64,000 bases of DNA from Lepidodermella squamata (GCA_047495785.1 JBLDXI010000016.1:682001-746000); one strand, 5' to 3'. Shown: positions 1 to 34,245, counted from the stretch's first letter. The notes: a model not told the origin generated them from the letters alone. Numbers and translations: made by a program.

Positions 1-785
1 ACCAACAACAGAAGCCGAGGTCGATTCGGTGTTACACGTATCTGAACATGAGGTTGGAAGGCAGATAGATTTGACAGCCCAACTTTTGCTTAAATCAATG
101 GCAGAGGAAAGCTTGATGATGGCAAAATCCTAATTCCGATTGGTTGCATCAAACTGCGGATGCCACGAAAAGTCCTCAGCCGTTATCGAAAATTCAGTAG
201 ATTCGACGATTTGAGAGTTAACATCTCCAAAAAACGCTCGAACGTGCGATGGAAAATTATTCGAGTTCTGATTGAACAATACGCTTTTGAAGAAAATTAA
301 CTAAGAGTGAGCTCGGTTGGTTTTATGGTCTTACTACAAAGGGCCTGCTGTGGTCAAAAGATATCTGTCGCCGATGATTGTTGCGCTGAAATTGTATGAA
401 TCTTGCATACTCGGAGTCTTGACCACCAGACGGGCATTCCACGGATATCTGACAAAGGGACCTCTGTATCACTACTTTCCTAAATAGAGCAATTCGACTC
501 ACGCGTAAAGAGGAGCATCCACTCCGCCAAGTATTCCTATCCCACTCCGACTCGAAGTATTGAACATAAAAGTATTTAATCCACATTCTGTTGGTATCTT
601 AGGCGGTGTGGTGGTAGTTACGGGCGGAGCCTGAGTGGTAGTCGGAGTCGTAACCGTTGTCGACGCTCGAACTCGAAGGCCTGGCCCGTAGTTTTCTATT
701 ATAGAACTCGGCAAAGGGGGGCATGCTTGGTTTCGATAGGCCCCAAGGACTGCGAGAATTCCGAGAACAAGATTAGCTGCGAGTC
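1..785 (-). pseudogene. Pseudogene of the two-domain S1 serine protease (copy A), running off the window's left edge
   Basis: Same exons as copies B and C (signal-like LVLGILAVLGAY, Thr-rich linker, ILGGVDAPLYA|YPWNARL, GDRYLLTTAG). The ATG-containing segment present in copy C (ttctttttttgatacaATG) is missing, and TAC>TAG creates a stop at 130-132 (NRN*DFAII). Confidence 0.85.
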
Positions 786-1309
786 TCAGCTTCAAACTCT
801 CGAAAATAAAAACTCGTGCATATATATCTGGGCGAACCCGGGTAGTTTCCCTTTTTAATTGCAGATCCTGTGATAATTGCTGCCTTCCTTTTCTATAGAA
901 ACCTCTAACGGAGGCGTGGAAGCGTTGGCAGCTAAGGTCACGCGCATGTTTTCGATCAACCGTTAGGTATGTGGATCCGACTCCGGCTCGTGAATTTTTT
1001 TTCAACTTAACGACTTGGTGTCACGCCTATTCACAACAAAACATTATATTCTTTTGTTTGGTTCGGATGTGGCTATTTATCCTATTTCTGATGAAAAAAT
1101 TGTTTAAGGAAGCGGATGTATGGATATCCTCATAAACCTATCCACTGTTTATGTAGCTTTGGATCAAAACTTTCAGACTGAATATTTTGCAAATTTATTG
1201 GGTACAATAGAAAGAACATTTTAGTTGAAATGGTTTGGAAAATACAATAGGCTGAGCGGTGAGCTAGAAGATGAAACCTTGAGAATGTACTCTCGAACTA
1301 TGAGCATAC

Positions 1310-1740
1310 TCAATTTTGCGAGTTCTTCACGAAAGCGTTGATGATTTTCTGCCAGCGCCTCTCCGACGACATGATGCGGCGAGCAAGCAGCTTGGCCCAA
1401 ATGTAGAACGGATGCGGCGATGCGTTGGCGCAAAGGCTCTTAGCATCATCGTTTGGAAGAATTTCGCGGCAAAGCTTCGCGGCGAGCAGGCGCTCGTTGT
1501 TCGACATTATTTTCAGCAATTTTGATGCAGCTACCAGCTCGCGTTTTGCCACTAGAATCCACACACGTCCTAAAGAAGAAAACTAATGCAATAAAAACAA
1601 CAAATACATAGGATGATAAACTAACGCGCAAGATAGTTTCGTAATCGGATGGTGGATTCGCCCCGTGAAAGGCCTTCGCCGCCACGGTCGCCCATCAGTG
1701 AGCCGATAAGCGTAACCAAAATTGTCCATCGAAAGCACAT
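1310..1740 (-). CDS. Unknown secreted basic protein, family member P1 (subtype alpha), 124 aa, 2 exons (1740-1626, 1569-1310)
   Basis: Spliced ORF MCFRWTILVTLIGSLMGDRGGEGLSRGESTIRLRNYLARRVWILVAKRELVAASKLL...CREILPNDDAKSLCANASPHPFYIWAKLLARRIMSSERRWQKIINAFVKNSQN. It has a 56-nt GT-AG phase-1 intron at the same position as its paralogues and TATAAA at 1772-1777. Confidence 0.85.
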
Positions 1741-2399
1741 TTTTAGTATTTTACAGTTACGGTTACTTAACTTTATAGCCTCCTAGGTATGTGCGCAACC
1801 AAAAGATGTTTGTTTCAAATCTATCATGACAAGAGCCGTCAAGCCGCGTATTTGATACGTCTATTAATTATTCGCTAAAATTTGGGCCCATCAGAGACTG
1901 ACAGTAATGTGTACACCTCATCTGGCTAATCATGTCCTAGTTTGACACTCCCTTCACATAGCAGCCAGGGTTTATGGCTGATACGATAAGTTCGTTATAA
2001 ATGGCTATCTTCCCCGTATAATTGACAGCTATGTCCGCATGCTTCTTGGAAGTTTGGCATATGCTGTCCATAAAATAGGTTAAGCCCGAATTAATGAGGA
2101 GTGTATGTGGTTAGCTTCCTTTAATATCTGTCCAAAATATCAAGTTTTCGAAATATATATCGCAGAACTGGATATCATGTTAATTTCCGCTATCGTTCTA
2201 GGCGCACTGTCCCAGACATGTGCTATACTTCAGAGTGCTCGACCCTTTCGAATTTCAAATCATATTTTTATTGTTGTTGTTCGCTACTGCTTGACTTGGA
2301 AGGGAAGGGACAAAATGATACGGTTCTTCGTATTTTCTTCATTAAAATTTTATAATATAATTTGTTATAATGGCTTTATTTATACTCCTTACGACTAAA

Positions 2400-2627
2400 C
2401 GTCTCTAACGGTTTCCCGTTTTGAAGGAGTGGGCATTTTACTGCCTAACACAGACACACAGGGAATCATGCGCACACACAGGCTTTGCATGTCCAGGTCC
2501 GGGAGCTGGGGCGAAGCGACTTGCACAAGGCCGCAACACTTTTTGGTGTTGCTCTGTGGGCAGCTTGAATCGAACGCACGACCTTCGTCATGATGAGGGG
2601 GCGCTCGATCCACTGCGCCACTGTGTT
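2400..2627 (-). mobile_element. tRNA-derived SINE, CORE-like
   Basis: Minus strand shows A box TGGCGCAGTGG (2620-2610) and B box GTTCGATTC (2575-2567), then CCTTGTGCAAGTCGCTT (2530-2514), resembling the CORE-SINE motif CCTTGGGCAAGTCACTT. There is no complete tRNA cloverleaf, and the 3' end is approximate. Confidence 0.7.
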
Positions 2628-3248
2628 TCATTAAAATTGTTGTCTGGTAATCATCAGTAAAGCAATGGTTTGCTAGCTATTCCGTAAGATTTTATTCGAT
2701 TAGCAGCAACAACTGGGGAAACGTCCCTTCCATTGTCCCTAAAAATCCGTTCTGCGAATGGTTTAATGTACCGAATGGTTTCAGTGCTCAGGAAAACGAC
2801 TCCTCCCATTCCTGTCTTTTGAAAATTTCGAGGGCCCCTCTGATGATCGCAAATTTCGGGCTGCTCGCTAAACCCCGTGAGAGCGGGAACAATTCGCACC
2901 ACTATATGATTTCCTCAAACAGCTTTGAACGCAGCGTGAGGATGATCAGCCTCGAATTCATATCGCATTCAAGATGATAGGAAAGGGGATTCGGACCAAT
3001 AGCAACCTGCTGAACATCGAATTTCCTCCGCTGTCAGTAGCATATTCTATTTGCTCAAAAGCTCCATTACCCTTAGTTTCGTGCGGACCCCAACATTAAT
3101 TGCGCAGTGGCACAAGTCCACTTTTACCCTCTGATTGTGCAATTAGTTTCGGGGGCCACACGAAGGCCGAAGGAGATCCGGAATTGAGCATTGAGCATTC
3201 TATTTAGCAACGGCCGGTGAAATTTCCCGAATGCAGTCCCTCACCTTG

Positions 3249-3420
3249 ATAGCCTCCTAAAAGTTACGAACTAAAGTCTGTTTGTTTCAATTATATCGTG
3301 ACAGGAGCTGTCAAAATACATAATTGAAAGGTCTACACTGCGTCCACTTTACTCCTGGTAATTTGGGTCCATCATCAATCAATTGTTTGACTCTAGACTG
3401 TAATGGGTACACATGCTGTT
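3249..3420 (-). promoter_or_regulatory. Orphan copy of the small-protein promoter with no adjoining coding exon
   Basis: Aligns by eye to 1775-1920 (atagcctccta...tgtttgtttcaa...tgacaggagctgtca...aatttggg.ccatca...gtaatg.gtacac). No family exon is found on its downstream side. Confidence 0.6.
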
Positions 3421-4332
3421 CACCGGCCCATCTCATCCGCATCGCATATTTCTTAGGAAGAGAAGTAATTGCTGTCCACAAAAGCCCGAGGTTACGAGAG
3501 CGTATTTTATGAAAGCAACTTCTCAAAAGTTTGATTGACTGAAAACGTTGATCAACAAAATCGTTTTAGGTACGAGGAATTACCTAAAACCAGTGTTTTT
3601 TTAAGGGGTTTACGTTTAAAACGTAGGCAACGTTGACAAAAATTGGACGGTTTTTTATGGGGATGCCATTCAGAGAAGGGAACATCAAAGTAAAATGAAA
3701 ATGCATGTCTGAGATCCAACCAAGAGCTGACCTTAGGTCATACATGTCGGATTCGCCCGCGTTCAAAACCAGGCGCATTTCCCGGTTTTTTCCTGTTCAG
3801 GAAAGGATGACAGACTTTCGGATCATATAATTAACCCAAATCTCGCGGAAATTGATTTTCTTCCGATATTTTCTCAACAATAGTATATCATCAAATTTAT
3901 TCAGAATCTTTAACAGAGACTTCAATTGACGATACAATTTCGATGACGCCGTGCAGTTCGACTTCACCAGCGCATTAGAATTCAGACTTCAGACCAAAAA
4001 GTAACAAAAATGAGCAGGCTTGTAACATAGGAGTGTTTACATTTGATGCTACGATTCAGGCGAAGCTTACAGTTTAGGTAACATAACCAGTAAAATAGCA
4101 AAACATAACGGTAACAACAGATTAACCCTAAAACGATCATCGGAAATCATGTGATAAATATGTGGAGAAACGAGGAAATGGCATCCACGTTATTACTGGC
4201 GACGACTTCCATTTAAAATATCTTCGTTCTTCTTTTTGTCCGTTTAAAAGTACATTTTATGATAGCGAAACCGTGAGTGAGCAGAACCGCTGCTTCATAG
4301 ATAAATATTTCTTGTTATCGAGCACATGCGTG

Positions 4333-4765
4333 CTACAAGGGTGTTCCTTTGAAGGCATTTGTAATCTGCAGCCATCGCCGCTCCGGGGACATGATGTGGC
4401 GAACAAGCTGTTTAGCCCAAATGTAGAACGGGTGCGGCGAGGCGTTGGCGCACAAGCTTTTCATGTCATCGCCTGGCACAATTTGCCGACAGTGGTCAAT
4501 GGCTATAAGGCGCTCGTTTTTCGACATCAATTTTATCAGCCTAGAAGCAGCTTTCACCTGACCCTTCAAAATTAACATCTGCACGCGACCTAATAACAAA
4601 TTCATAAACATACCAAACTATTAATATAGAACGAGTATTTAACATACTTGCGAGACATTCACGTAACCCAAGTTTAGCATCATATTGCGTTGGAGCATCC
4701 TCTATGTTACTATCGCTTATAAGCGGACCAACGAGCGTAAAGAAAACTGTCAATCGAATGCGCAT
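4333..4765 (-). CDS. Unknown secreted basic protein P2 (subtype beta), 124 aa, 2 exons (4765-4648, 4589-4333)
   Basis: MRIRLTVFFTLVGPLISDSNIEDAPTQYDAKLGLRECLAS|RVQMLILKGQVKAASRL...HCRQIVPGDDMKSLCANASPHPFYIWAKQLVRHIMSPERRW; 58-nt phase-1 GT-AG intron. Confidence 0.85.
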
Positions 4766-5559
4766 TTTTAAATATCAGAGAATGATCAAAATTAAATGAG
4801 AAAACTATTCGCTTAGTTGATGCCATTTTGAATGACGTCACTTTATCATAGGAAGGTCGGAAAATTATTCTCCTACGATCTGAAACCAGGTTATTGTTGA
4901 CAGCTGTTGTATTTAATGCAATTTTCAATTTCAATTTTGCGCTACCTGATTTTTACGTGCCAATGTTGATTAATGTTTAACGGAATACTTTTCATTATTC
5001 CTACTTGTGTTTTATTCTTTCGATTGATTTCGCCCTAGATTGCGATAATTGATGGTTACAAGTGTTTTGTATTGAAAAATTAAGAGGATACGTGCTAAAT
5101 ATGTCCGAACCTTCATTCAGGTACACTGAAATGTCCAATTTTCCGAAGTTCTTGGGCTTGCGAAAACTTCGACTTCTATGCGGGACTCCAGCTAGAGGAA
5201 GGTTGAAAAAACACTTATGGGACCCTTTGGTTTCTTCGGCTAGGTGCTAGAAAGCATCATAGCTCCCGGATCCTACTTAAAGACTCATTGATTCTTTGCA
5301 GCTTTTTATTTGTTTGCGTTACTTAAAAGAACCTATAAAAGCTTGAATATTAGCGCTCATCAAGCGATTGTTCCGTGCTAATTAATACCACCTCATTAGC
5401 TTGCTTGTGCGGGCCTTTTACTTTTTATCCTAAATCATTATCAGATCTTCGCGGCAATTAAACTAAGAGCATCAAAGTCTGGTTTGAAATGATTTTGAAA
5501 ATAATTATTATTAGCCTTGAATAAATACAAATTTGTCACTTGTTGAGTAGGAGAGTCAC

Positions 5560-7917
5560 TCAAACAGCATTAGCCCTAATCCAGTCGATATAGGCAGCAA
5601 CTCGCGTGTAAACCGAGTACATAAGCCCGCAACGGGTGAAACCGAAAGAAGTTATGCCGCAAAGCTTGTAGTAACCCTGCGAGCCCGCCATCATCAACGG
5701 ACCGCCAGAATCACCCTGACATGTGCTGACCCCAGAGGTTTCATAACCTTTAAAACAAAATGAAACCTTCAATTAATCTATAAGTGTCATGGCTGAAATT
5801 GACGAACCTGCGCACATCATAGTGTCCTGGATTAAGCCGGCTGAAAACGTCGCCGAGCATGTGTTCTTACTAACAATTGGAATGATGGCGTATCGTAAAA
5901 CGTCACTCAATCCACCCAAGTAATTCGTCAGACCCCAGCCTGAAAGACAAGAAATCAGGTGAAAATTTACCACATAGCACTTAATAAGACAGCTCTAACC
6001 GGCCACGGTGGCCAATGTTCCAGCTTCGCAATCATCTGAGGCTGATGCTGGCAAGCAGATTTTCTGGACATTCCACTTCGAAAAATCAAGAGCCGCTGCA
6101 TGAAAAGGGTTTAATATACTTCTGAGCCCGATTTAGCAGCAACCTTACCAGGAAGCTTTAATAGCGCGATGTCGTTTATGTAGGTCGCTGCGTTGTGAGC
6201 TGGGTGCGGCTTGCAGATTGTAGTTGACACGGAATATTCGCCGCTCTCGTCTCCTGCTGTCTGATTGTGTTCCCCGACGTAAATTATAGCGGACCTTTTT
6301 AATTGAATCACTTTTTGAAAATTGATAACAATCGCAACTTGATGGATTACGAGAAAGTTGTCCCGGCTAATGAAACGCAATGGGCGGCTGTCAGAACGTA
6401 TCTGCAAAAAGGTTTTACCAAGTAGTGAATTAAAATTGTAAAAATACCTGTCACTGATTATGCTCCCTGTGCATCCTAAGGCCGTTCCATTGGAAAATAT
6501 TGTCAGAATTCGAACCGTCCTAAAAATAAAAGCGCGTGATTGAAGGTTCCAATGTTAAAAGTTCTCCTTAACCAGGGGAATTGATTAGGAAGAGCTATAG
6601 AACCTGCAACAATACCAGATCCAGGCGCATCCCTGCTGTTGTAGTACTTGGAATGACCACAAGTACTCGCGACATTTGTTGGTGATGGTGTCGAAGGAAT
6701 TTGCTGGTTGATAACGTTTTGTATCCAAGGCAAGGCCATACACAGACGTGAGCTGTAATTATGCGAGAATATATGTGAAAATTTCAAGTAGCGCAGCAAC
6801 TTACAACACTGAATCGTAAAGAGTGGAGCCAGACTTGTATCCGTAGGAAAACGCGCCACACAGCGTGTAGCGTGTTCCGTTGAACACCGTCAATCCTGCC
6901 CCGACGTCGTAAGACCAAGGCAGGTATCCATTAGAGTTGGTAGCGCAAAGCTTCGTGTCTGTCACTGGCGCATCTGACGAGCTGTATTGAGCCTGACAAC
7001 TAGCTCTGTTCGAGATTTTCAACGTTGAACTCTTCAAAGTTGGCGATTGCGAAGTAGAGGAAACCGATGTTGAACCCCATCCTGAGAGAGATCAATTCTT
7101 GGTAAAAATAATTTCGTGTTACGACTGCTAGAACATACCAACAACAGAGGCTGTGGTTGACTCTATATTACACGAATCCGAACAGGTAGTTGGGAGGCAA
7201 ATAGATTTGACAGCCCAGCTTCGGCTGAAATCTATGGCGGCCGAAAGCTTGATGATCGCAAAATCGAAATTACGCTTGGATAGCTCAAACATCGGATGCC
7301 ACGAATAGTCCTCAGCCGTTATCGAAAATTCAGTAGACTCGACGATTTGAGAGTCTAGATCTCCAAAATACGCTCGTATATGCGATGCAAAAGCAAAGGA
7401 ATTCTGAGAAAATAAAGGACTTTTGACGAGAATTAACTGAGTGAACTGCGTTATTTTTATGGCCTTACTATAAAGAGGAGGCTGTGGTCAAAAGATATCT
7501 GTCGCCGATGATTGTTGCGCTGAAGTTGAAGGAATCCTGCATATTCGGAGTCTTGACAACCAGACGGGCATTCCACGGATGCCTGACGGAGGGACATTTC
7601 TATTACCACTTTTTTTAAACCAATTTAACTCACGCGTAAAGAGGAGCATCCACTCCGCCGATTATTCCTATCCCGCTTCGACTCGAATTATTGAAGATAA
7701 AAGAATTTAATCCACAGTCTGTTGGTATCTTAGGCGGTGTGGTGGTAGTTACGGGCGGAGCCAGAGTGGTAGAAGGAGTTGTAACCGTTGTCGACGCTTG
7801 AACTCGAAGGCCTGGCCCGTAGTTTTCTATTATAGAACTCGGCAAAGGGGGGCATGCTTGGCTTCGATAGGCCCCAAGGACTGCGAGAATTCCGAGAAAA
7901 AGATTAGTTGGGAACAT
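5560..7917 (-). CDS. Secreted tandem S1 (chymotrypsin-fold) protease, copy B: inactive domain 1 + active domain 2, 11 exons
   Basis: Signal peptide, Thr/Pro linker, then IIGG. Domain 1 has TTASS in place of TAAHC and YDVGAG in place of GDSGG. Domain 2 has IVAG, LTAAHC, NDIALLKL and STCQGDSGGPL. Ten short GT-AG introns keep the frame open to TGA at 5560-5562. Confidence 0.92.
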
Positions 7918-8442
7918 TTTATCAAGAGAATCAACATCGAAATTCTCAAGAATACCCAGCCTATATATATCTGAGCAAAGCCAGTTGGCTTCTCTGTTCA
8001 GTCGCACATCCTGTGAAATTTGCCACCTTCCTTTTTTAATTTCTATTGTAACTTCTGACGGAGACGTGCGATAGCGTGGGGCGGCTTAGGTCACGCACAT
8101 ATTTTTTCCGTTAGGTATCTGGATTTAGGTTCCGGTCATTTGTTTTTTCAACTGCCTCGACCTGGTGTCACGCCTATTCATTACTGAAAACTATGTTCCT
8201 TTGTTCGGTTCGGACGTTACTATATCCTATTTCTGATGCAAAGAAAGTGTAAATAGGCGGATAAAGGAAATCCTCTAAAACGTATCCTGACATTAGATCA
8301 CAAGTTAATCACTGCATATTTAGCTAATTTATTAGGTACAGTAGAAAGAACATTTTAGCTCAAAAGACATGGAAAATTTAACAGGCTGAAGTTTGAGCTC
8401 AAATTTTTGAGAATTTTTGAGAATTTAGAATGAGCTAATGCG

Positions 8443-8790
8443 CTACGAGCCTAATTTTGCTTGCGAGTTGTTCGCGAAAGCGTTAATAATTTTCTGCCAA
8501 TGCCTCTCCGAAGACATGATACGGCGGGCAAGCAGATTAGCCCAAATGTGGAACGGATGCGGCGATGCGTTGGCGGAAAGGCTCTGAACGTCATCGTTCG
8601 GAAGTATTTCGCGGCCAAGTTCAGCGACCAACAGCCACTCATTGTTCGACATCAACCTCAGCAGTTTGGATGCTGCTGCCAGCTCGCATTTTGCCACCAA
8701 AATCAACACACGCCCTTAAGAAAAAATGAATATAATATTCAAACAATTATGCGTAGAAAGATGAACTAACGTGCGAGATATTTGCACCAT
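8443..8790 (-). pseudogene. Small basic protein P3 (alpha), 5'-deleted pseudogene
   Basis: Exon 2 and the intron (8770-8715) are intact, but exon 1 is reduced to ...CKYLA. ATG, signal peptide and TATA are gone, with promoter sequence (aaatctatcatgaca, ~8826) joined almost directly. Both conserved Cys are substituted (LGREILP, SLSANASP). Confidence 0.8.
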
Positions 8791-9859
8791 GATTTATTTA
8801 CCAAATGATTTATGTTGTTTGTTGCAAATCTATCATGACAACTTACCTGCGTCTTCTAATTATTTGCTATAATTGGGGCCCATAAGCAACCTGAAGTTGA
8901 CATCAACGAGTACACCTCATTCAGTTCGTCATGTCATTCGTCATTGATTGGCGTTCTTTTCTAAGCTGCCCTCCTCTGTGCGAAATGGCTTCTAAATAAT
9001 AAGTAATTTACTGAGAAACCAGGGTTGATGAATATATGGAGACGGTAACTTCATTATAAATGGCTGAAAAACTTGTTAATAAAAGTCAAAAGAACGGATA
9101 GGACCGGATTAATCACAACATCCTAAGATCGTGAACTCTTGCGCTTCCGAACTTTTGGTTCGCGTCAAGTAGAGGTTCCCTCTTGCTATAGATAAAGTTG
9201 TGTTGAACTTCAAGTCCTGTTCGCCCCTTACATTAACGTATATTTTTCGAAAAATAGCAGATGGCAGTACCGAAATCCGAAATATTAGAAATATCTTGCG
9301 GCGCGCTGCCGGATGTTTCCGCTTCATAGTCGCCTGCTCTATCGGCATTGCTTGCTACTGTCTACTCTGGATTCACCACTTTTGGGGTTTGCCTCTTATG
9401 TGGCCTGCCGTCTCAAGCTTACAAATCAAACGACTCTTCTTTCGCTCATCCTGAAAGTGGCATCGAAATCTCAAGTTGTGAAAAATATGTTTTGTTCATT
9501 CTTTTAACGGCTTGGTCCAACAAACGGTAAATATGTGTTTTTACATAATCAGTATCGTCATTGAGAACGCTTCTTAAAATCAAACGAGGATTTGGAGGAT
9601 TTCAAAAACTGCCACGTTGTTTACAATTACTCACCATGGCGTGCAAATCTACATTTTGACTGCATAATGTAAATCTTGGCAAACTCATCCGAGTCCTGTT
9701 GAAGGCGTTATTTATCTTTTAAGAATCAACGATAGGTTGAGGAATATCTCATATCTCACATTTTCAAGAAATCAAGTAAATAACTTTAGTAGAACGCAAC
9801 GTCACTTCGGCTAGTCAAGCGAGGCAATTCTCTCACTTGAGATTCCTATTCCGCTTACA

Positions 9860-10050
9860 ATCTTGATTCTCTGGAAAGCATTGCTGATCTTCTACCAATG
9901 GCGTTCTGATGCGGCGAACCAACAGCTTGGCCCAAATGTAGAATGGGTGCGGTGAGGAATTTTTGCAAAGGCTTTTCTTGTCAGTGATTGGAAGAAATTC
10001 CCGGCAGCGTTTAAGAGCTATTAGGTGCTCGTTTTTCGACTATAGTCATC
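9860..10050 (-). pseudogene. Small basic protein P4 (beta), exon-2 fragment
   Basis: Matches P7 exon 2 (SKNEHLIALK..CR..LPITD.KSLC..SSPHPFYIWAKLLVRR). It has an 8-nt frameshifting deletion near 9910 and no 5' part. Confidence 0.8.
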
Positions 10051-10349
10051 AACTGAGCCGCGGAAGAAAATTCATTTTGCCAACGAATCATAACGGCTGA
10101 AAGAATGAAACGCAAGTTGTACATGCATGGACAAAAACAAGTGGACTTGTGGTGTGAGCTTGGAATGTATGATTAACGTCGTTTTCAAGATTGCTTCGCA
10201 CTTTCGACGTGCCAGTATTGATTGATCTGATTAAGCAAACAGAATCTCTTGCGCAAAACGACGCAGGTCAGCTCTGACCACGATTACTGTTTAGCGCTAT
10301 CATTCCTAAAGTTTATCGACAACAAGAAACAAGATATTTAATATTCCGG

Positions 10350-10796
10350 CTAGAAATTTAAGATGGAAATATGACAAGTATACGTGGTGAATTTGTCTGA
10401 AACTGGGCATACACGCAAGCGACGTTCTGACGACATGATGTGGCGAACAAGCAGCCTTGCCCAGATGTAGAAAGGCTGGGGCGAGGCGTTAGCGCTCGCA
10501 TCGCCAGTTGGTAGAATCTTCTGGCAGTCAATATGCGAAATCGTCCGTTCGTTTGCCGACATGAGCCGCAGCAATCTAACGGCAGCATTAAGCCGGCGTT
10601 TGAGAATCAAGTTCCAAACGCGCCCTGAGTCATGAAGGTAATGAAATAGCTTTAGTTTTCGAATTTGGAATATTAACATACTGGCAAGGTATGACCTCAG
10701 GCCCACAATTGGTTCAACGTTCGACGAACCAGCTTCATTGCTCTCGCCTATCAGCGTGCCGACAAGCGTAACAAAAACTGTCAATCCGAGGCACAT
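10350..10796 (-). CDS. Small basic protein P5 (gamma), altered copy with a new C-terminus
   Basis: MCLGLTVFVTLVGTLIGESNEAGSSNVEPIVGLRSYLA|RVWNLILKRRLNAAVRLL... It lacks the RLC tripeptide (second Cys), and after ERR it reads into former downstream sequence (matching 16223-16252). It may be non-functional. Confidence 0.65.
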   Translation of the reverse strand: MCLGLTVFVTLVGTLIGESNEAGSSNVEPIVGLRSYLASMLIFQIRKLKLFHYLHDSGRVWNLILKRRLNAAVRLLRLMSANERTISHIDCQKILPTGDASANASPQPFYIWARLLVRHIMSSERRLRVCPVSDKFTTYTCHISILNF

Positions 10797-11300
10797 TATT
10801 TTTCTGCTCACTGGAACGTGCGGCAGTGACTAAAGGCAGAGCTTACTGACATTTGTCAATACACCCGACGCACCACTGTTTTTGCGGTGTGCGTGTATTT
10901 TAAAGTTGCACTACTGTCATTAAAAAATGCATTCAAGCTATAGAACCCTCACTTTATGCGTTGCCGCCTCAATTACATAAGAAATTGTATGGAATCAAAG
11001 CAGTACTTTTCCCGTTCGCTGTAACCGCATCGCGGATACAATAATTCATGAGCATTAACATGAGCTTATTGACTCATTGATTACTTGCACCTATTTATTT
11101 GTATGTGTTAGTAATAGGACCCTATGAAAGCTTGAATATTAGCGCTTGTCAAGCGTTTATTGTGTTGATAATTGATAACATTGATTTGACCTATGGTCCA
11201 ACTCATTAGCTTGCTTATACGGAATTTTCCAAGTTAAAATATCATCAGATCTTCACGGCTATGAAATTAACTAAGAGCATCGAAATCCTATCCATACAGC

Positions 11301-13653
11301 TCAAACAGCATTTGCCTTAATCCAGTCGATATGGGAAGCAACTCGCGTGAAAACTGAGTATTTGAGCCCGCAACGGATGTAGCCGAAAGAAGTTACGCCG
11401 CAAAGCTTGTAGTAACCCTGTGAACCCGCCATCATCAACGGCCCGCCAGAATCACCCTGACATGTGCTGGCCCCAGAGGTTTCATCACCTTTGAAGCAAA
11501 TTAAAGCCTTGAATTAATATAAGTCGAGGCTGAAACTGAACTTGACGAACCTGCGCACATCATAGTGTCCTTAATTACGCCGCTAGGGAACGCCGACGAA
11601 CACGTGCTCGTACTAACAATGGGCATGGTGGCGTATCGTAAAACGTCAGTCATTCCACCGAAGAAATTCGTCAGACCCCAGCCTGAAAGACAAGGCAAAA
11701 GGTGAAAATCCCACATATATGAAGGACGCCTCTAACCTGCCGTGGTGGCCAATGTTCCAACTCCACAATCATCTGAGGCTGATGCAGGCAAACAGATTTT
11801 CTGAACATTCCACTTTGAGAAATCAAGAGCGGCTGCGTGAAAAAGGGTTTTCTAAACTTCCGAGCCTGATTTGATAGGTATCTTACCAGGAAGCTTTAAT
11901 AACGCGAGGTCGTTTACGTAGGTCGCTGCGTTGTATGATGGGTGCGGCTTGCAGATTGTAGTTGAAACGGAATATTCGCCACTCTCGGCCGTATTTGTCC
12001 GATTGTGTTCCCCGACGTAAATAACAGCGGACCTTTATAATTAAGTCACTTTTTGAAAACGCGAAACAAAACTTGATGGATTACGAGAAAGTTTTCCCGG
12101 CTGCTACAACACAATGGGCGGCTGTTAGAACGTATCTGCGAAACATTATCTAAGGGAAAGTTAATTTAAGGTTGGAAAAATACCTGTCACTGATTATGCT
12201 CCCAGTGCACCATGAGGACGTTCCATCAGAAAAGGATATCAGAATTCGAACAGTCCTACATTAATAAAAACATTTGATTCAAGGCTCAAATGTAACTTTC
12301 TCTCTAACCATGGGAATTGATTGGGAAGAGCTATAGAACCTGCAACAATACCGGAGCCAGGCGCATCCCTGCTGTTGTAATACTTGGAATGGCCACAAGT
12401 ACTCGCCACATTTGTTGGTGATGGTGTCGAAGGAATTTGCTGGTTGATAACGTTTTGTATCCAAGGCAAGGCCATACACAGACGTGAGCTGTAATTATGC
12501 GAGAATATATGTGAAAATTTCAAGTAGTGCAGCAACTTACAACACTGAATCGAAATAATAAGAAGTGGATCCAGAATCGTATACGTAGGATAACGCGCCA
12601 CATAGCGTGTAACGTGTTCCGTTGAAAACCGTCAATCCTGCCCCGACGTCGTACGCCCAAGGGACGTTTCCGTTAGAGTTGGTAGCGCAAAGCTTCGCGT
12701 CTGTCACTGGAGCAGTTGTAGAGCTGTATTGAGCCTGACAACTAGCTCTATTCGAAATTTTCAACGTCGTACTCTTCAAAGTTGGTGATCTCGAAGACGA
12801 GGAAACCGATGTTGAACCCCAGCCTGATCGAGAGATAAATTGAAAAAGGTCCACGCCTCGAGAGCTAGAACGTACCAACAAGAGACGCCGAGGTCGACTC
12901 TGTGTTACACGGATCTGAACATGAGGTTGGAAGGCAGATAGATTTGACAGCCCAACTTTTGCTGAAATCAATAGCAGAGGAAAGCTTGATGATGGCAAAA
13001 TCGTAATTCCGACTGGTTAGATCAAACTGCGGATGCCACGTGTAGTCCTCAGCCGTTATCGAGAATTCAGTGGACTCGACGATTTGAGAGTTAACATCTC
13101 CGAAATACGCTCGAATATGCGATGGAAAATTATTGGAGTTCTGATAAAATAAAGCGCTTTTGACGAAAATTAACTGAGAGTGAACTGGGTTGTTTTTATG
13201 GTCTTACTATAAAGGGGTGGCTGTTGTCAAAAGATATCTGTCGCCGATGATTGTTGCGCTCAAATTGTAGGAATCCTGCATACTCGGTGTCTTGATTACC
13301 AGACGGGCATTCCACGGATGTCTGAGTAATGAGCCTATCAATTAGTTTTACCTTCAATGAACCAATTGAACTCACGCGTAAAGAGGAGCATCCACCCCGC
13401 CAAGTATTCCTATCCCACTTCCACTCTTATTATTAAAGATGAAAGAATTTATTCCACATTCTGTTGAGGGCTTAGGTGTTGTGGTGGTAGTTATGGACGG
13501 AGTGGTAGTAGGGGGATTAATCGTTGTCGAGGCTTGAACTCGAAGGCCTGGCCCGTTGTTGTCTGTGATAGAGCTCTGCACAGTGGAGCATGCTTGGCTT
13601 CGATAGGCCCCAAGGGCTGCGAGAATTCCGAGAACAAACATAGTTGCGAACAT
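11301..13653 (-). CDS. Secreted tandem S1 protease, copy C: inactive domain 1 + active domain 2, 11 exons
   Basis: Same exon structure as copy B. Domain 1 has TTATP and YDVGAG; domain 2 has IVAG, LTAAHC, NDLALLKL and STCQGDSGGPL. Stop at 11301-11303. Confidence 0.92.
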
Positions 13654-14159
13654 TGTATCAAAAAAAGAATCAGCTTCAAACTCTTCGAACTCGCATTTAT
13701 GAGCGAAACCGGGGTAGTTTCCTTTTTTGGTTGCACATCCTGTGATAATTGCTACCTTTCTTTTTCACTTTCCATAGGATATCCTAACGGAGGCGTGTCA
13801 GCGTGGGGTGCTCATACTTTTTTATTTCCAACCGTTAGGTAGTTGTGGGTGTAGCTTCCAGCTCTTACGTTTTTTCAAATGCCACGGTTTGGCGTCACGT
13901 TAATTGTAGCAAACTATGTAGCAAACTTTTGTTTTGTTCGGATTGTTGTGGCTATGCTCGATGGAAAACAAGTGTGTCTCAGCGGGAAACGGATGTTAGC
14001 AAAGCCTCAAAAACTTAGAGAAAAAGTTCAACCCACATTATTCCGTCAGGTTACGTCAATATTACATGAAAATAAAGTTGGATAAGTTTGGAAATATCAG
14101 ACCGCAGCTCAAATGCTCACAAATCCACTGTAGAGAGTACTTGAGCATTGTGAGCCTAT

Positions 14160-14570
14160 TCAAGCTTTCGATTTTTTCACGAAAGCGTTAAAGTTTTTTA
14201 GCCAACGCCTCAACGACGACCGACGCGACATGCTACCGTTAGCATTATCGTTGAATACTCGGATTTAGGCTTGTTTACATCCGTTTCAAGGCGACGGATG
14301 ACAATAAGTACAAAGTGGTTTTATTAGCGTGAATGAAAAGGCAAAAACAAAAGACTTTTCACTTGCCACCTCTCGCCTTCAAACTATCGCAAACATCTCT
14401 AAATCCGAGTTATTCAACGACACGCTAACGATACGGCGAGCAAGCAGCTTAGCCCAAATGTAGAACGGATGTGGCGTTCGGAAGAATTTTGCGGCAAAGT
14501 TTCGTGGATAGCAGGCACTCATTATTCGACATCAACATCAATTACAGCAATTTGGATGCAGCTACCAGGC
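14160..14570 (-). pseudogene. Small basic protein P6 (alpha), disrupted exon-2 remnant
   Basis: Degraded AASKLL...REILPN / PHPFYIWAKLLARRI / RRW..NAFVK sequence with an internal deletion and a MITE inserted at a TA. Confidence 0.8.
14236..14431. mobile_element. 196-bp MITE, Tc1/mariner-like
   Basis: ~32-bp imperfect terminal inverted repeats (cgttagcattatcgttgaatactcggatttag / ctaaatccgagttattcaacgacacgctaacg). TA is duplicated on both sides (14234-35, 14432-33), and paralogue P3 has a single TA here (gacatgaTAcggcg). Confidence 0.85.
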
Positions 14571-15165
14571 AGGCTGCTTCCGCTTCTCACAGCAGCCACC
14601 GTCTCTATCTTAGAGGAAGTGAATAATCGCCCGTGAATAATCATCTTGAGAGCAGCATCAAAATCTCAGGCCGTCAAAACCTTTCACAGACCCTTTTTTC
14701 ACTTGTTAACTTTTCATATTTTCAAAAAATGACTGTACAGAACTGACTACTCGGATCGCCTTGAATCTTTCAACATTAAATTCTGCCGGTTCGGGGGCCA
14801 AACTCGGATGCATGGGAAAATCGAGAGAATCGGTATTTTCATGTCGGATGATTTTAGTCACATTTTTGGTTGTCGGATGAAATAAGACATTGGTCGGATG
14901 AAAAAAGTCACACCCTGTTCAACTGATGGTGAGAAAGTGAAGCGAAAAAATGCTCATTGAGCAAAACAGCGTTGTTGTTTTATCATTTTAAAATATGGCA
15001 AGTTCATCCGAGTTCTGTTGTCTGTTCATCTTCAGCTAGTGGGGTCAAGGAATAGCTGAGAGTTAATCTTAGGCTGCGGAATGTCGAGAAAATTAAAAGC
15101 TCAAGTTAAGCGGATCTTGACCTCGACTATTCAAGCGAAATGATTCAGACAACCAGTGTTCCCGA

Positions 15166-15601
15166 TCAGCTTGCAATCTCGGTACTCTTGAAAGCGTTGC
15201 TGATCTTCTGCCAACGTCGCTCTGATGACATGATGCGTCGAACAAGCAGCTTGGCCCAAATGTAGAATGGGTGCGGCGATGCGTTTTCGCAAAGGCTTTT
15301 CATGTCAGTGATGGGTAGAATTTGCCGGCAGTGCTTAAGAGCTATAAGGTGCTCGTTTTTCGACATCAACCCAAGAATCCTAGAAGCAGCTTTCACCTTG
15401 CGCCTCAAAATTAACATCTGCACGCGATCTGGGAGAATTTCATGTGAAATCTCAAATAAGAAATTTAAAACAAAGCTTTAACAAACTTGCGAGGTATTTC
15501 TGCAAGCCAACTGTTGCAACATATTGCGATAGAGAGTCGTCATCACGGTCGCTCAACAGCGATCCCACCAGTGTAATAAAAATGACCAATCTAAACCACA
15601 T
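15166..15601 (-). CDS. Unknown secreted basic protein P7 (beta), 125 aa, 2 exons (15601-15487, 15428-15166)
   Basis: MWFRLVIFITLVGSLLSDRDDDSLSQYVATVGLQKYLAN|RVQMLILRRKVKAASRILGL...HCRQILPITDMKSLCENASPHPFYIWAKLLVRRIMSSERRWQKISNAF; TATAAA about 30 nt upstream of the ATG. Confidence 0.87.
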
Positions 15602-17300
15602 TTTGCAAATTATGGACTCGGTTCCTAAACTTTATAGCCGTAAGGGCCTAATCATATATCAAATCTATCCTGACAGGAGCTGTCGAGTCACGTAATTGAT
15701 TTGTTTCCTGATTACTCTTCTGCTTAATTTTTGGGTCAATAAGTTATTGATAATGATTTAAGCGTCCTAGTCTGAACGGCCCACACAATTATCACCTCTG
15801 ATGCTAGTGACGAGTGACGGGGCAGTCAAAATTAATGGCATTGATTAGGAGTATATTATACGCGGCAATTTCTGAGGTTTTATTGAAAACGGGATTGGCA
15901 TATCTCAGGAGGCGCGGCCAAGCTGTCCACGAAACACACGTAAGTACGTCCGATCTTGCGAGAGATCTTTGACTCATTCTATCGGGTGTTGGCTTAGAAT
16001 TTTGTTTAATGTCGTTTTCGAGGTTGTTACGCACTTTTGACGTGACAGTAGTGATTAGTGATTAAGCAGACAGAAACTCCGGTAAAACGACGTAGGTCTG
16101 CTCTGCCCATGAGTAATGTTTTGCGCTATCATTCAGTTACGTTGATAGACAAAAATAAAAAGATAGTTAATAGTTACTATTCAGGCTAGAAAGGCTTAAA
16201 GATGCTGAAAAGAGGACAGGGATACGTGGTGAATTTGTCTGAAACTGGGCATCAACGCTTCATTTAATTCAACTATGTTGCTCCCGGACCCGCATAAAAG
16301 TTGTGAGATTTCAACTGTTTCCGATTAATTATGCGCGCAAAGCATCTATTTCTAGATCAAAACATCCATGAGGTCTTTTGCTAGTCGCAATCATAGAGTA
16401 TTCACTGCTAATTTTCGTGCTAGGCGCAATTGGTGACAAAAATTATGTATATCGAAAACCCCTGTCATAACTGATTTTTTCATGCCATAAAACTACGTGG
16501 ACAACGTGGAATTACGTGGTATAATCAACCCCAATTAATGTGACTAGAAAGTCCGCTCTGATTTTTTTTCCCCTACCGTATTAACTGAATTATTACCACG
16601 CCAAACCGAGAGGCAAAGCTGAAGTCACAACAGGCCATAAATTTAAGAAGAAAGTGGCAGGGAGAAGTGGCAGGGAGAAACGTGCTCTAATGTCAATTTA
16701 GGAACTGGAAACTGGAATTCAAAAGCAAAGATCGGCGGTGGATTAATATGATTAAAAATGGATTAGAAAGCATGCATGTATATCTTGATTCCATTAGGAG
16801 CCAAGCCTCAAGTAAGCAGCCTTGCGTAGCTTCATTTCTGCGGCTGCTCTCTTATAGACACCTGCCGCAATTTGACCAATGTCGGTGGAAGGCTGAAAAA
16901 ACACCTCAGTTCCCGCATCCTACTTCGCACACTGGATCGGCATATGCGCGGAATTGACCTATTTGAGGCCTGATATATCATTTCGAATGACCTGAATTCC
17001 GACTTTTTAACGAAGCTGATGACTAACCTTTTTGGCAGTACGGTAATGCTAAGCCGTTACTACGAAGACTTGATTCCACATGGCTGGTACTTCATTTGGA
17101 CTGGTAAAACCCTAGCGATTCATTCTTTTTTGTCTTTATAGAGTAAAAGAGAGATACCTCTTTTGTTTCGAGGGCAATTTACCACTACGGTTGAGGAATA
17201 TAAAAGGATGTTCAAGAAAATTGCAGAAAAATGAGCACAAAGTCACTTCGACTACTGATACTACTGAGTCACATAGTTGAGATTCCCGTTCAGCTTGCAA

Positions 17301-17738
17301 TCACTGAACTTTGGCGTTTCTCTTGAAGGCGTTGCTGATCTTCTGCCAACGTCGTTCTGAAGACATGATGTTGCGAACAAGCAGCCTGGCCCAGATGTAG
17401 AAAGGCTGAGGCGAGGCGTTAGCGCAGAGTCTGCTCGCATCGTCAGTTGGTAAAATCTTCTGGCAGTCAATAGATGAAATTGTCCGTTCGTTTACCGACA
17501 TCAGCCTCAGCAGTCTAACGGCAGCATTTAGCCGACGCGTGAGAATCAAGTTCCAAACGCGCTCTATAAGTGATGAAAGTGATGGATCAGCTTCAGTTTA
17601 TAGAATATAAAATAGTAACATACTGGCAAGGTATGACCTCAGGCCCACAATAGGTTCAACGTTCGTTAGCCCGGCTTCTTTGGTTTCGCCTATCAGCGAG
17701 CCGACAAGCGTAACAAAAACTGTCAATCGAATGCACAT
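17301..17738 (-). CDS. Unknown secreted basic protein P8 (gamma), 125 aa, 2 exons (17738-17624, 17563-17301)
   Basis: MCIRLTVFVTLVGSLIGETKEAGLTNVEPIVGLRSYLAK|RVWNLILTRRLNAAVRLLRL...DCQKILPTDDASRLCANASPQPFYIWARLLVRNIMSSERRWQKISNAFKRNAKVQ. Confidence 0.87.
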
Positions 17739-18413
17739 TCTGCGGAACACCGCGGTTGCAGATAGCAATCTTCAGCCTTATATATCGCAAATTAACGTGT
17801 TCCAATTTAATCCTGCTCTATTCTGACAGGGCGTCAACTTTATTATTCATCTGCTAATCCCTTGTGGTTAATTGCACCAGTTACCGAATTTTCCATAATT
17901 ATGGCCATTTATTTGAGTGTAATCGTGAGCTGAGATTCTAGCGTCATAATAGACATTTCGTTATAAATGTCTGGCCTGTCATGTGTCAATTTCAATCAAA
18001 GATATGAGATTTGAAAGCAATATTACAGCGGACAAATTGCTGGCAAAATATGATTGAAGGCCCAATTCCTAATTATTTGTTTTCCCTGGGATGCGAAACC
18101 TGCAGCGTCTTCAATATTTGAATTTCCTTTGATTCTGAATCGAATACAGAAACCCGAAATAAAGAAGGTTCTAAAACAATATCATGCGATCATAGGAAAA
18201 ACTCGGCAACTAGTCTTGTGTTCTTTTTCAGGAATGTTCTAGGCCAGAAACAACGCGTTCGTGCTAATGCGAAGTCTGTGGTTCTTTCGTGAGTTGACGT
18301 CGCATCATTATCGCGTGACAAAAGATAAGAAATGTCGCGATATTCTCTTATAAGCCTACTATCAGAACTCCCACAACTTGTAATCAGTGCATTGCAATAA
18401 TTGTTAAGAGGAA

Positions 18414-20007
18414 ATGACTTCCGAAAAGCTCGACTTTTATGCAACCCTTGAAGCTGTTAAAAATGCGACGCTGCCAGCTCGCTCCTTGTTCTACCTTGTA
18501 ACCCCAGCTGAGTCATCACCAGCAAGGATTGAAGATGTTCCTGATTTCATCACAGCGAGCTTCCCGTACTTCATTACAATGGTCGCAATGGAGGTCGCTG
18601 CTTCGATTTTTCTCCAAAAGAAATCCTATCAATGGAACGATATGCTAACTTCAGTATCGGCCGGTTTGTTCTCAAGAGTTTTCGAGTAAGACTCCATTTG
18701 ACGTTACTTTCTCTAAGTACTTTATTCCATCTGTTTTACCGCAGCTTATTTCCAAAGAGTATAGATTTAGCTGGGTACCTATACATCTGGAACAACTGGC
18801 GACTAATTGATATGCCGAGTGACTCGATTTGGACCTGGATTTTCTGCATGTTGGCCTTCGATCTGGGGTATTATTGCTTTCACAGAGCTGCGCATGGTAA
18901 GAGAGCATGTCTATGGCCATCCCATTACCAATTTTCGAAATTCTATTAGAAATAAACTTCTTATGGGCATTTCACCAAACACATCATAGCTCGGAGTACT
19001 ACAACTTATCGACCGCTTTGAGGCAGCCTTTGATAGCTAAATGGGGAGCTTTCGTGAGTCTAATCACCTAACCTTAATAATTGTAACTATGCTATTCTGC
19101 TTAGATCTTCTACCTGCCGATAGCATTTTTTGTTCCGCCATCGATTTACCTGGTCCACATGCAATTGAACCTGTTATATCAGTTCTGGATTCATACCGAA
19201 CTCATCGGCAATATTGGCCCTCTGGAGTTGGTTTTGAACACCGCAAGTCACCACCGAGTACACCATGGTCGTAATCCTTACTGCATCGATAAGAATTACG
19301 CCGGTTTTCTCATCATCTGGGATCGTCTTTTCGGAACTTTCGAGGCTGAACGTCAGGAGGAAAAAGTCCACTACGGTCTTATCCACAATATCAAAGATTT
19401 CGATGCTCTTTGGGTTCAATTTTGCTCCGTAAAGGATATGTGGCGTAAATTTAGGGCTAATTCTAAATCGACCAAGTATCACGGGTTGGATAAGGTTAAG
19501 AACTGTTTGAAGTCAATATTCTACGGTCCTGGCTGGTTTAGCAGGAAGCCGTACTTCCGCCTAGGAGATCCAGCCGACCTACCCCCGGTTGAACCTAATC
19601 CAAAAAGATGGGATCCTTATGTTCCTCTGTGGCAAAGCGTTTACGCAGGGGTTCATTTCCTTATCGCTACAGTCATTCATACAATAGGAACAGAGAAGAC
19701 CCGATCAATGCCGCAGATCGCTGTTATGTTAGCAGCTTTCACGATTTTGACCGTAATGTCCGTCGGCAACATTTTCAACCGCAAGAGGCTGGCGAAGCAT
19801 TTTGAGATTGCCCGATGCGCTGTCGTGATTGCCGGAGCTAAACATGTTCTTTCATCGCTTGGCATGACTGCTCTTATCACACCGATGCAAGTTATCTTTG
19901 GTGTTTCCGCAATTTTGTGGTTGTTTGCGGAAAATAATGTTGAAGCTAAAATCCCTGAAGCCGCTGAAACGAAACCGGTTAAAAAAGACGAAGCAAAGGC
20001 GCAGTAA
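18414..20007 (+). CDS. AGMO: Alkylglycerol monooxygenase paralogue 1 (4 exons)
   Basis: Fatty-acid-hydroxylase His boxes [25 protein letters not shown] and [19 protein letters not shown], plus IFYGPGW; three ~55-nt introns. Confidence 0.93.
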
Positions 20008-20383
20008 CTTATGACAACTTGGATAGCTCGCTGAAATATGTATATGCAATAATAAAATTGACGATCCATACATGCTTTCCTGCCATATTGCTATGCATAT
20101 TTTCAATAATTCATTTATCATTTAAGAAATTCTGGAATAAGTTGAATTAGCGGAAAAAAATTCATCAATGGTCTGGCGTAAAAATAGTTTTCCTATTGCT
20201 GAGCACGCGTTCAAATATTCAAATACGCGTTGGCATCACTAAATCCGCCAAGCAAATGAAGCCGAATCAAAATTCGATCTATGAAGCAAAGCTAGCGATT
20301 AGCAATTTAGGCCGAAGTTTGATGCGCATGTTACAATCATATTAACGCAATCACTTTTCACCGGCTTCGAGAGACTCCCTTAA

Positions 20384-20785
20384 CCCTTAGCCGCCGGCGC
20401 AATGACGTGTTAACTCGAGCACCTTTCAGAAAATCCCAGAAAATCAAGAAGAGGCTAAAATCAAATTCTGAGTCGGCAGAAAGTCTTACATTTAGCCTTA
20501 GATTGAAAGCCGAACCTCTTTTTCAGAAGAAATTTACCTAGGTTGCCGTTGCTATGACGTGTTAACGCGTTTTCATGACGTGTTAACAAGTCACTTGAAA
20601 TTTTTCTCACTATTTTCGACCTGGTCGGAATGGCTTTGAAAATTTGGATTTTCGGGGAGTGCTTGTTTCTAGCTATTGATTTATCATAATTTATGACGCA
20701 ACAATGGGTTCGATAGCCCAAATGCTCCGACCACGGTGAATTTTCTCCGGAATTAACGCGTGTACACCTCTTCGGCGGCTAAGGG
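20384..20785. mobile_element. 402-bp non-autonomous piggyBac-like element
   Basis: Perfect 13-bp TIRs CCCTTAGCCGCCG / CGGCGGCTAAGGG, flanked by TTAA at 20380-83 and 20786-89. Internal ATGACGTGTTAAC occurs three times. Confidence 0.88.
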
Positions 20786-21341
20786 TTAATGAGGCCCTTA
20801 GTTTGACCAATTGAGTCGACCGGAGTTTTTTCCTATCATGGAAATAAAAATGAAGCAGGCGCACAGGTAATTGTTCTGCTCTATTGTGCGATTCTCTCGG
20901 CTTCGGTAAAACGTAGCTGTGCTATTTTATGCTATCATTACAGTCGCATGAATCATCAGAAGACAGCTGAGAGCTAGGTTTTTTTCTTTACCAGGTTTTT
21001 CACCCTGCTTTGGCTCTGAGTTATTTCATGCGATTTTTTTTGCTATTCTTCAAAAGAAACAACGAAAGACTAAATGTTTCACCATGCTTTGCAGTCTATT
21101 CTGAGATGCATTTCTATTTCTTTCATGCTTTCATTTTGCTTTGAGTGTGATTTTGACAGAATGATTTTAACATAGAGTATTAAACTAGTTCAATATCCTC
21201 CCTGAGGATTCCAGGTTCAAGGTCCCTCATTTATCTTCTAGTACTGCAGATAAGAAATGTCGCAATACTATCGCTACATTAATCCCCAAGCCGCTCAATA
21301 TATATTCTTGAATGCTTGAAAATTGAAAACTAGGCCATGCA

Positions 21342-22945: not shown

Positions 22946-23241
22946 CCTCTGAGTGTTCAACCAACTTTGAATGATTTTTGGTTATTTATGAGAATTATAA
23001 GCGAAATAAAGGCGCTTCTGTGTTCGTTGTTCATTTTCGTGAAATCCTCCATCCGTAATGAAAAAGTTGTAATGATAAGGTTGTTATATGTATCAGGTCT
23101 GGCGCGTCCTGTTGTTGACGTCGCACGCACCAAACCCCGCACGTTCTCAGTTCAAATTGTTATCTTTTACAATTGGTCATACGCAACTGGCTTTGTATGC
23201 TCTTTGGAGTCTAAAAACCTACTTTTGGACATAGTAAAAAA

Positions 23242-24841: not shown

Positions 24842-25376
24842 TCACAAGTTGAGCTGTTTGGTTGCCACCTTCTCTCGTCCTTTAGCTTCGTGTACCTTGA
24901 GGGGGAAATTCATGTTAATTTAAATAAATGGGATAATTATTTTTTCGGCTTACAGATCCATTTGCAGCATTCAAAATGATTAGAGAAGGGACACTTTTAA
25001 TCGTAAAGTGATCAGAAAGCTTGGTCTAAGTAGAATAATATGCCTTAAGTTCTAATTCAGCCAGGAACCACCTTACCCTTCTTTCCTCGTCATCGTAAGG
25101 AATCGTCAACCATGGCATAGTTTTGTAGTACTCGGCGTAGCTTTTCGCATCGTTGTCGCAAGAAACGAAGATAATCTCCAAATTGTTTTTGCCAGATTTC
25201 ACTTGCTTGTAGTAGTCGATTAGATTCGGCGTGAATGCGCGGCACGGTGGGCACCAGTGGCCGGAGAAATACAGACCAATAAATTTGCCCTCACCGCAAA
25301 GGCTAGAAATCGCAACCTCTTGACCGGCTGCATTTTTCACTTTCTCACCTAAGATGGCTGCAACAGTATTAGCCAT
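24842..25376 (-). CDS. Nucleoredoxin/tryparedoxin-like single-domain thioredoxin (WCPPC), 3 exons
   Basis: [32 protein letters not shown], then spliced IKSVPSLIILN and VHEAKGREKV...NL*. Confidence 0.9.
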
Positions 25377-34222: not shown

Positions 34223-34245
34223 TAAATAAATAAATAAATAAATAA
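34223..34245. repeat. (TAAA)n microsatellite
   Basis: taaataaataaataaataaataa. Confidence 0.9.

Follow-up and report, generated by a model that had tools for sequence, protein, structure and literature searches.

The first 17,740 nucleotides (nt) of a 64-kilobase (kb) window from Lepidodermella squamata (GCA_047495785.1 JBLDXI010000016.1:682001-746000) contain one gene block that is present as three tandem copies, in which all genes, a two-domain S1 serine protease gene and up to three subtypes of a small gene (alpha, beta, and gamma), lie on the minus strand. Here, the window means the whole 64,000-nt stretch of DNA that was analyzed, and positions are counted from its first letter. We conclude that the region is probably a lineage-restricted tandem array shaped by birth-and-death, in which the protease and the small genes were co-duplicated through adjacency.

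Within a unit, the transcriptional order is gamma, beta, alpha, and protease; unit 1 has no gamma gene. We refer to the proteases as A, B, and C and to the small genes as P1 to P8, and we call the first S1 domain of the protease dead and the second live, for the reasons given below. The predicted gene models and domains, with lengths in amino acids (aa) and, for two products, the isoelectric point (pI), are listed here together with the extents of units 2 and 3:

1..786, minus strand: protease A remnant; exons 1-3 of an 11-exon plan; cut by the window start
1310..1740, minus strand: P1, alpha, intact; exons 1740-1626 and 1569-1310; intron 56 nt; 124 aa; mature pI 10.7
4333..4765, minus strand: P2, beta, intact open reading frame (ORF); exons 4765-4648 and 4589-4333; intron 58 nt; 124 aa
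5276..10811: duplication unit 2, from the protease B 3' flank through P5 (from self-BLASTN)
5560..7917, minus strand: protease B, intact; 11 exons; introns 46-60 nt; 606 aa
6710-7665 and 5563-6613, minus strand: dead S1 and live S1 domains of protease B, respectively
8443..8715, minus strand: P3, alpha relic; exon 2 open; no recognizable exon 1 or signal peptide; both conserved cysteines replaced
9853..10045, minus strand: P4, beta relic; exon 2 truncated, with one or more frameshifts and one or more stops; no exon 1
10350..10796, minus strand: P5, damaged gamma; exon 1 intact; frame still open
11065..17740: duplication unit 3, from the protease C 3' flank through P8 (from self-BLASTN and Pfam)
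11301..13653, minus strand: protease C, intact; 11 exons; introns 48-62 nt; 606 aa
12446-13407 and 11304-12349, minus strand: dead S1 and live S1 domains of protease C, respectively
14424..14568, minus strand: P6, alpha relic; exon 2 fragment interrupted by one or more stops and one or more frameshifts; no exon 1
15166..15601, minus strand: P7, beta, intact; exons 15601-15487 and 15428-15166; intron 58 nt; 125 aa
17301..17738, minus strand: P8, gamma, intact; exons 17738-17624 and 17563-17301; intron 60 nt; 125 aa; mature pI 11.1

The repeat structure was determined by self-BLASTN on positions 1-17740, which yielded direct repeats only. The E-values range from 1e-50 to 0, so these matches are not due to chance. 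The collinear same-strand repeats span genes plus intergenic DNA, and components are 78-86% identical between units. The self-matches are as follows:

1-1638 with 7137-8783: main match, 78% identity
1-928 with 12874-13807: main match, 82% identity
5559-8214 with 11300-13942: main match, 82% identity
9850-10040 with 15166-15364: collinear match, small gene, 82%
10151-10416 with 15985-16258: collinear match, intergenic spacer, 77%
10420-10797 with 17350-17739: collinear match, small gene, 85%
4349-4768 with 15188-15604: collinear match, small gene, 73%

The array ends at about 17740, and the next gene, an alkylglycerol monooxygenase, begins at 18413 on the plus strand; the other side of the array is cut by the window start. 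Six of the 11 visible genes are intact (proteases B and C plus P1, P2, P7, and P8), and five are relics or damaged. The initial annotation had described three repeats of one unit, in fixed order and on one strand, with eight small-gene copies in a given order that fall into three subtypes. Each of these observations is borne out: the first by the direct repeats (the strand being minus), the second by TBLASTN and a motif scan of the window (eight copies of the small-gene core and no more, each of them on the minus strand within 1-17740), and the third by an exon-2 identity matrix. Its calls of intact and broken genes also agree with ours, with P3, P4, and P6 as relics and P5 as damaged. Its description of the unit 1 protease as dead holds as far as the gene can be seen: the visible third of protease A has lost the in-frame start codon and contains one in-frame stop and no frameshift, and judged on these visible exons (1-3 of 11), protease A is probably a pseudogene.

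The spacer between alpha and beta (1800-4300) is about 2.5 kb long in unit 1 vs 0.6-1.1 kb in units 2 and 3. The extra spacer DNA has no repeat match by self-BLASTN and no Pfam match, and neither the spacer ORFs nor the plus-strand ORFs of the array match Pfam.

The four intact small genes appear to share one architecture: P1, P2, P7, and P8 are each predicted to have two exons separated by a phase-1 intron of 56-60 nt and to encode 124-125 aa. Their products have a signal-peptide-like start and a mature part of about 105 aa with a pI of 9.7-11.1. All four include two conserved cysteines, which probably form one disulfide, an N-A-S N-glycosylation sequon beside the second cysteine, and an invariant F-Y-I-W-A-(K/R)...I-M stretch. 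Pairwise synonymous divergence (dS) between the four genes is 0.8-1.9, which is saturated, and the ratio of nonsynonymous divergence (dN) to dS (omega) is 0.17-0.37, which, for these four sequences, gives no sign of pervasive positive selection. Saturated dS combined with low omega indicates that the small genes are old, constrained, and coding.

In contrast to the intact copies, P3 to P6 are each without one or more of the family features (signal peptide, two cysteines, sequon, and core). In P5, one in-frame deletion in exon 2 takes out a conserved cysteine, and the C-terminal end has been replaced after a deletion of roughly 1 kb relative to unit 3. Relic defects were read from TBLASTN pieces; an automated frameshift count was unreliable, as it also scored intact controls at alignment ends.

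The three subtypes are real. Exon-2 DNA identity is 82-86% within alpha, 71-84% within beta, and 82% within gamma, vs 56-71% between subtypes; this matrix indicates that the subtypes predate the block duplication. Subtypes were assigned from the pairwise identity matrix, and a neighbor-joining tree put the two shortest of the eight copies, both fragments, in the wrong place.

P1, P7, and P8 have two upstream elements in common: a CTGTCA-GATAGA-like box, roughly 75 nt before the ATG, and a TATAAAG-like element, roughly 35 nt before it. P2 and P5 have neither the box nor the TATA element, and their upstream DNA is unrelated to that of the other copies. The P2 upstream region includes a perfect TGACGTCA palindrome.

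The protease models were built from trypsin-like open frames joined through canonical GT-AG introns (ten per gene), and all introns in the array are 46-62 nt long. Proteases B and C are predicted to share the same 11-exon plan, with one open 606-codon frame across both domains, and all insertions and deletions between them in the aligned domain-2 half sit in introns. The product consists, in order, of a hydrophobic N-terminus/signal peptide, a Thr/Pro-rich linker, the dead S1 domain (aa about 85-333), a short invariant linker, and the live S1 domain (aa 366-606). In both B and C, domain 2 has the triad motifs TAAHC, ND(I/L)AL, and GDSGG at aa 407, 460, and 556, and its sequence identifies it as a putative chymotrypsin-type S1 domain with a full His/Asp/Ser triad. 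In domain 1, the His and Ser motifs are replaced and the Asp motif is kept (B and C; in A, the His motif, the only one of the three within view, is replaced as well); by its motifs, domain 1 is a predicted protease homologue, not an enzyme.

Pfam Trypsin (PF00089) matches the last exon of B at 52.2 bits and the domain-1 exon ORF of C at 22.6 bits; the score is 19.7 bits for the middle exon of B domain 2 (cut-off 20.6). The last exon also matches 390 S1 proteases in the PDB with E below 1e-3, and its GDSGGP aligns with the same motif in TMPRSS11D. In this alignment, the pocket position six residues before the catalytic Ser is Ser in the live domain and Asp in TMPRSS11D. Because Ser replaces the pocket Asp, the specificity of the live domain is predicted not to be trypsin-like.

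Between B and C, dS is 0.27, which equals the intron divergence (0.27), while dN is 0.10 and omega is 0.37. When the protein is split into its parts, the dead domain has an omega of 0.27 and the live domain one of 0.42, while the signal peptide plus linker comes to about 1. Since dN is well under dS, both copies have been constrained since the duplication.

The proteases have further features of their own. At the predicted activation junctions of both S1 domains in B and C, the residue before the I-I/V-G/A-G N-terminus is Gly, not Arg/Lys, which would be unusual; these sites lie at 6613-6625 and 7665-7677 in B, with equivalent sites in C, and a Cys-Gly occurs 16-17 residues upstream of each junction. 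Introns 2, 7, and 10 end in AAG, not CAG/TAG, a feature common to B and C. Because the domain 1 frame seemed to run into a TAG where exons 2 and 3 meet, we considered an alternative genetic code and rejected it: a canonical intron of 49-51 nt restores the frame in A, B, and C. Stop-codon use in the long ORFs of the window is mixed. A U12-type intron at the same junction was considered and dropped.

From these observations, we infer secretion, a duplication mechanism, and adjacency as the cause of co-duplication. One ancestral gene for a small secreted protein would have triplicated into alpha, beta, and gamma beside a two-domain S1 protease gene. The synonymous divergence between subtypes is saturated, so this triplication would be old. 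The whole block, about 5.5-6.7 kb, would then have been tandemly copied at least twice, most simply via unequal crossing-over between units, and single copies would have decayed after the block duplication. Each gene would have its own promoter region, and the products would carry signal peptides. Given the signal-peptide-like N-termini, the Thr/Pro linker, the N-x-S sequon, and the cysteine pair, a secretory destination is likely for both the protease and the small proteins. As a working guess, the small proteins may be extracellular partners or ligands, tied to the protease loosely at most.

To place the small proteins, we searched for relatives in several protein and metagenome collections. 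Pfam gave nothing above the E 0.05 significance threshold, a word-indexed search of 5.8 billion proteins gave no small-protein candidate, and no small-family match was detected in Joint Genome Institute (JGI) metagenome contigs (two scans) or in viral contigs. A profile search of 1.84 billion representatives returned four weak matches, of which three are repeat proteins and one is credible. The credible match, P0004 (201 aa), combines a signal peptide with a Cys...Cys-x-N-A-S...F-Y-V-W-A-K...I-M core. A second distant member is a 166-aa ORF on a metagenomic contig (L006:3891-4391, minus strand; hhalign probability 88%, E 3e-6). Both belong to small clusters that are found only in four ENA metagenome assemblies:

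P0004 and P0127-P0129 (197-201 aa) and P0125 and P0126 (166 aa): relatives of the small proteins, in ENA ERZ23486764, ERZ27332993, and ERZ27333047

Like the window proteins, these metagenomic ORFs have a signal peptide, two cysteines at matching positions, an Asn after the second cysteine, an N-x-S sequon between the second cysteine and the core, and an invariant F-Y-x-W-A-K...I-M. However, they are just 25-30% identical to the window proteins, they are longer, consist of one exon, occur once per locus, and have no adjacent two-domain protease. Altogether, P1-P8 and these metagenomic ORFs are a putatively secreted family with almost no relatives among billions of proteins. A PDB profile search with the small proteins had a best E of 0.1, which is not significant. 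AlphaFold2 returned all-helical models of low confidence from the paralogue alignment and from the wider family (mean predicted local distance difference test [pLDDT] 55 and 43, respectively), and a Foldseek search of the PDB from a low-confidence model found no fold match (best E 4.7). The small proteins are thus predicted to be strongly basic and all-helical.

The genomic context of the relatives bears directly on whether the protease and the small genes belong together. Contigs L006, L009/L008, and L004 overlap at 96-99% identity, and the gene order in their composite locus, which is that of a related organism, is alkylglycerol monooxygenase, Cys-loop channel, small gene, Cys-loop channel, alkylglycerol monooxygenase, further channels, and LDLa-trypsin. 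The 166-aa gene therein is flanked on each side by a Cys-loop channel gene and, beyond it, by alkylglycerol monooxygenase. About 8.7 kb separate it from the closest gene of trypsin type, which lies on L004 and encodes an LDLa module plus a single active domain; we therefore rejected orthology of this gene with the window protease. No protease occurs within the 3.3 kb that are available for the P0004-type gene. The window and the relative thus have the alkylglycerol monooxygenase and Cys-loop neighborhood in common, but not the pairing with a two-domain protease. The nearest alkylglycerol monooxygenases to those of the window are 51-55% identical ORFs on ENA metagenome contigs, and those of named animals from many phyla are about 39-46% identical; the comparison locus is distant, because its closest alkylglycerol monooxygenase is just 55% identical. 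Similar Cys-loop channels form arrays across related metagenomic contigs.

The initial annotation went beyond the repeat structure and proposed a functional secretory module, in which one set of secretory cells would make both the protease and the small proteins, and the two would work jointly. The small proteins would serve as substrates, pro-forms, inhibitors, or partners, and they may dock on the dead S1 domain and be presented to the live one. Part of this proposal stands, as the genes are under purifying selection and a secretory destination is likely, but a partnership between protease and small proteins is not supported, and we consider the module unlikely. Gene order is preserved across the three block copies, as a module would have it; however, co-duplication is already predicted by adjacency, since segmental duplication alone copies neighbors together. 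At least one intact copy of each component remains, which the initial annotation had interpreted as complementary losses. This is arithmetically true, but among the 462 ways of losing 5 of 11 genes at random, 297 (64%) leave at least one copy of all four gene types, so the argument is weak. Every product has a signal-peptide-like N-terminus, and the lower omega of the dead domain than of the live domain fits a retained binding function. On the other hand, the live domain has a non-trypsin pocket while its candidate substrates are Arg/Lys-rich, and a comparison of upstream regions across the array revealed no convincing promoter motif common to protease and small genes. The dN/dS values also show no sign of the arms-race evolution that is common in venom, immune, and gamete systems. 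Synteny of the protease with the small genes, which the initial annotation had named as a check, is not seen in the reachable relative: both of its family loci are without an adjacent two-domain protease. The alternative that the initial annotation itself offered, that unrelated neighbors were duplicated together, is at least as well supported.

It is also conceivable, though improbable, that the small proteins act alone and the protease is a mere neighbor, with the small proteins serving as host-defense or antimicrobial-type basic helical proteins or as secreted ligands or modulators, possibly of Cys-loop channels. The mature proteins are strongly basic and predicted to be helical, the relative's member lies between two Cys-loop channel genes and beside an alkylglycerol monooxygenase, and the window array abuts an alkylglycerol monooxygenase array with a Cys-loop channel gene 9 kb away. 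However, the argument from neighborhood draws on a single distant relative, the low-confidence structure models have no fold match, and no tie of the small proteins to channels or microbes was found. We give similarly little credence to the most elaborate scenario, in which the small proteins would form a novel class of secreted ligand or cofactor that docks on the dead S1 domain and the block would be a self-contained extracellular processing system, whose output might act on Cys-loop channels. Finally, it is hardly credible that the small genes are not genes at all (chance ORFs, pieces of repeat elements, or all pseudogenes): they have no database homologue with a name or domain and half of the copies are visibly broken, but four copies share a two-exon structure, phase-1 intron, signal peptide, and stop, their omega is low despite saturated synonymous sites, the cysteine pair and core motif are also invariant in two metagenomic relatives with their own signal peptides, and there are no copies elsewhere in the window.

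We therefore return to birth-and-death of a tandem array with co-duplication by adjacency, against which several points must be set. The splice models are predictions from sequence and paralogue conservation, and signal peptides were judged by eye, not with a predictor. The array may extend past the window start. The comparison involves a single distant locus on short contigs, and the absence of linkage there may leave room for a lineage-specific functional link. Both protease copies and at least one gene per small subtype have been kept under constraint since the duplication. Lastly, the stronger constraint on the dead domain than on the live one could fit a binding role, perhaps with the neighboring proteins.

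The window as a whole has about 42% G+C and many short exons, and a window-wide scan yielded no transfer RNA match and no Rfam match. Among the larger ORFs outside the array, Pfam identified four alkylglycerol monooxygenases, a nucleoredoxin-like thioredoxin, and a divergent Cys-loop channel; further ORFs encode an ANF-receptor domain protein, a BTB protein, an SLC26 transporter, and a BRO1 protein. The window is part of a compact eukaryotic genome with animal-like gene content; on the strength of this content, we rejected a human, a viral, and a prokaryotic source, and no virus-like feature was seen. Individual features outside the array include the following:

18413-24742 and 49419-50989, plus strand: alkylglycerol monooxygenase genes; a tandem of three adjoins the array, and the fourth is 25 kb distant; DNA identity is 73-75% among three of the four
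25026-25376, minus strand: nucleoredoxin-like thioredoxin, with an adjoining partial duplicate at about 25748-25973 that is 71% identical
26729-29071, minus strand: divergent Cys-loop channel with a long Ser/Thr-rich N-terminal region; weak Pfam matches (E 1e-9 and 1e-7)
31987-37885: direct repeats of about 300-550 base pairs (bp) with at most 87% identity (33109-33652 with 37348-37885); no Pfam match for the ORFs in these repeats
52869-53066 and 53720-53879: tandem arrays of short units (14 and 28 nt) just past a 483-aa secreted-looking ORF
52923-53066 and 53720-53879: inverted repeat of about 150 bp

Several known systems resemble parts of the array. Ovochymase/oviductin proteins are similar to the polyserases. 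In human polyserase-2 and polyserase-3, several S1 protease domains occur in one chain (PMC1435904). The window protease is polyserase-like by its predicted domain layout: as in the polyserases, chymotrypsin-fold domains would follow one another in a single secreted chain; as in polyserase-2, some domains appear catalytically incompetent; and as in both polyserase-2 and polyserase-3, there is no transmembrane or LDLa module. It differs from the polyserases in that the first domain is dead and the last is live, in the Thr/Pro mucin-like linker after the signal peptide, and in having Gly, not Arg/Lys, at both predicted activation junctions. Domain 1 itself is similar to serine protease homologues such as the scabies-mite SMIPP-S (PDB 3h7t, among the weak PDB matches of domain 1): the fold signature is retained, as its matches to Pfam Trypsin and to trypsins in the PDB show, the catalytic His and Ser are lost, and the domain is under purifying selection. 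Unlike the SMIPP-S-type homologues, it is fused to a live domain and is not free-standing; a binding function would be a candidate role.

Another such system is the mouse androgen-binding protein (Abp) cluster, where the duplicated unit is the Abpa-Abpbg pair. Abpa and Abpbg genes encode the two subunit kinds of a single secreted dimer; repeated duplication has enlarged the cluster, which includes many pseudogenes (PMC2291036, PMC4274081). As in the window array, subtypes of a small secreted helical protein have multiplied in tandem, and about half of the copies are pseudogenes. However, the Abp pairs form one dimer and evolve rapidly, whereas omega in the window is low and the block adds an unrelated enzyme gene.

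Altogether, the array is a real, lineage-restricted, and otherwise ordinary gene cluster. It is a clean example of a multi-gene block expanding and decaying in a compact eukaryotic genome, and it defines both a putatively secreted family with near-absent relatives and a polyserase-type protease in which constraint is stronger on the predicted dead domain than on the live one. Should the protease and its small-protein neighbors turn out to be co-expressed partners, the array would offer a tractable natural example of joint amplification of an enzyme and its partners as one unit.

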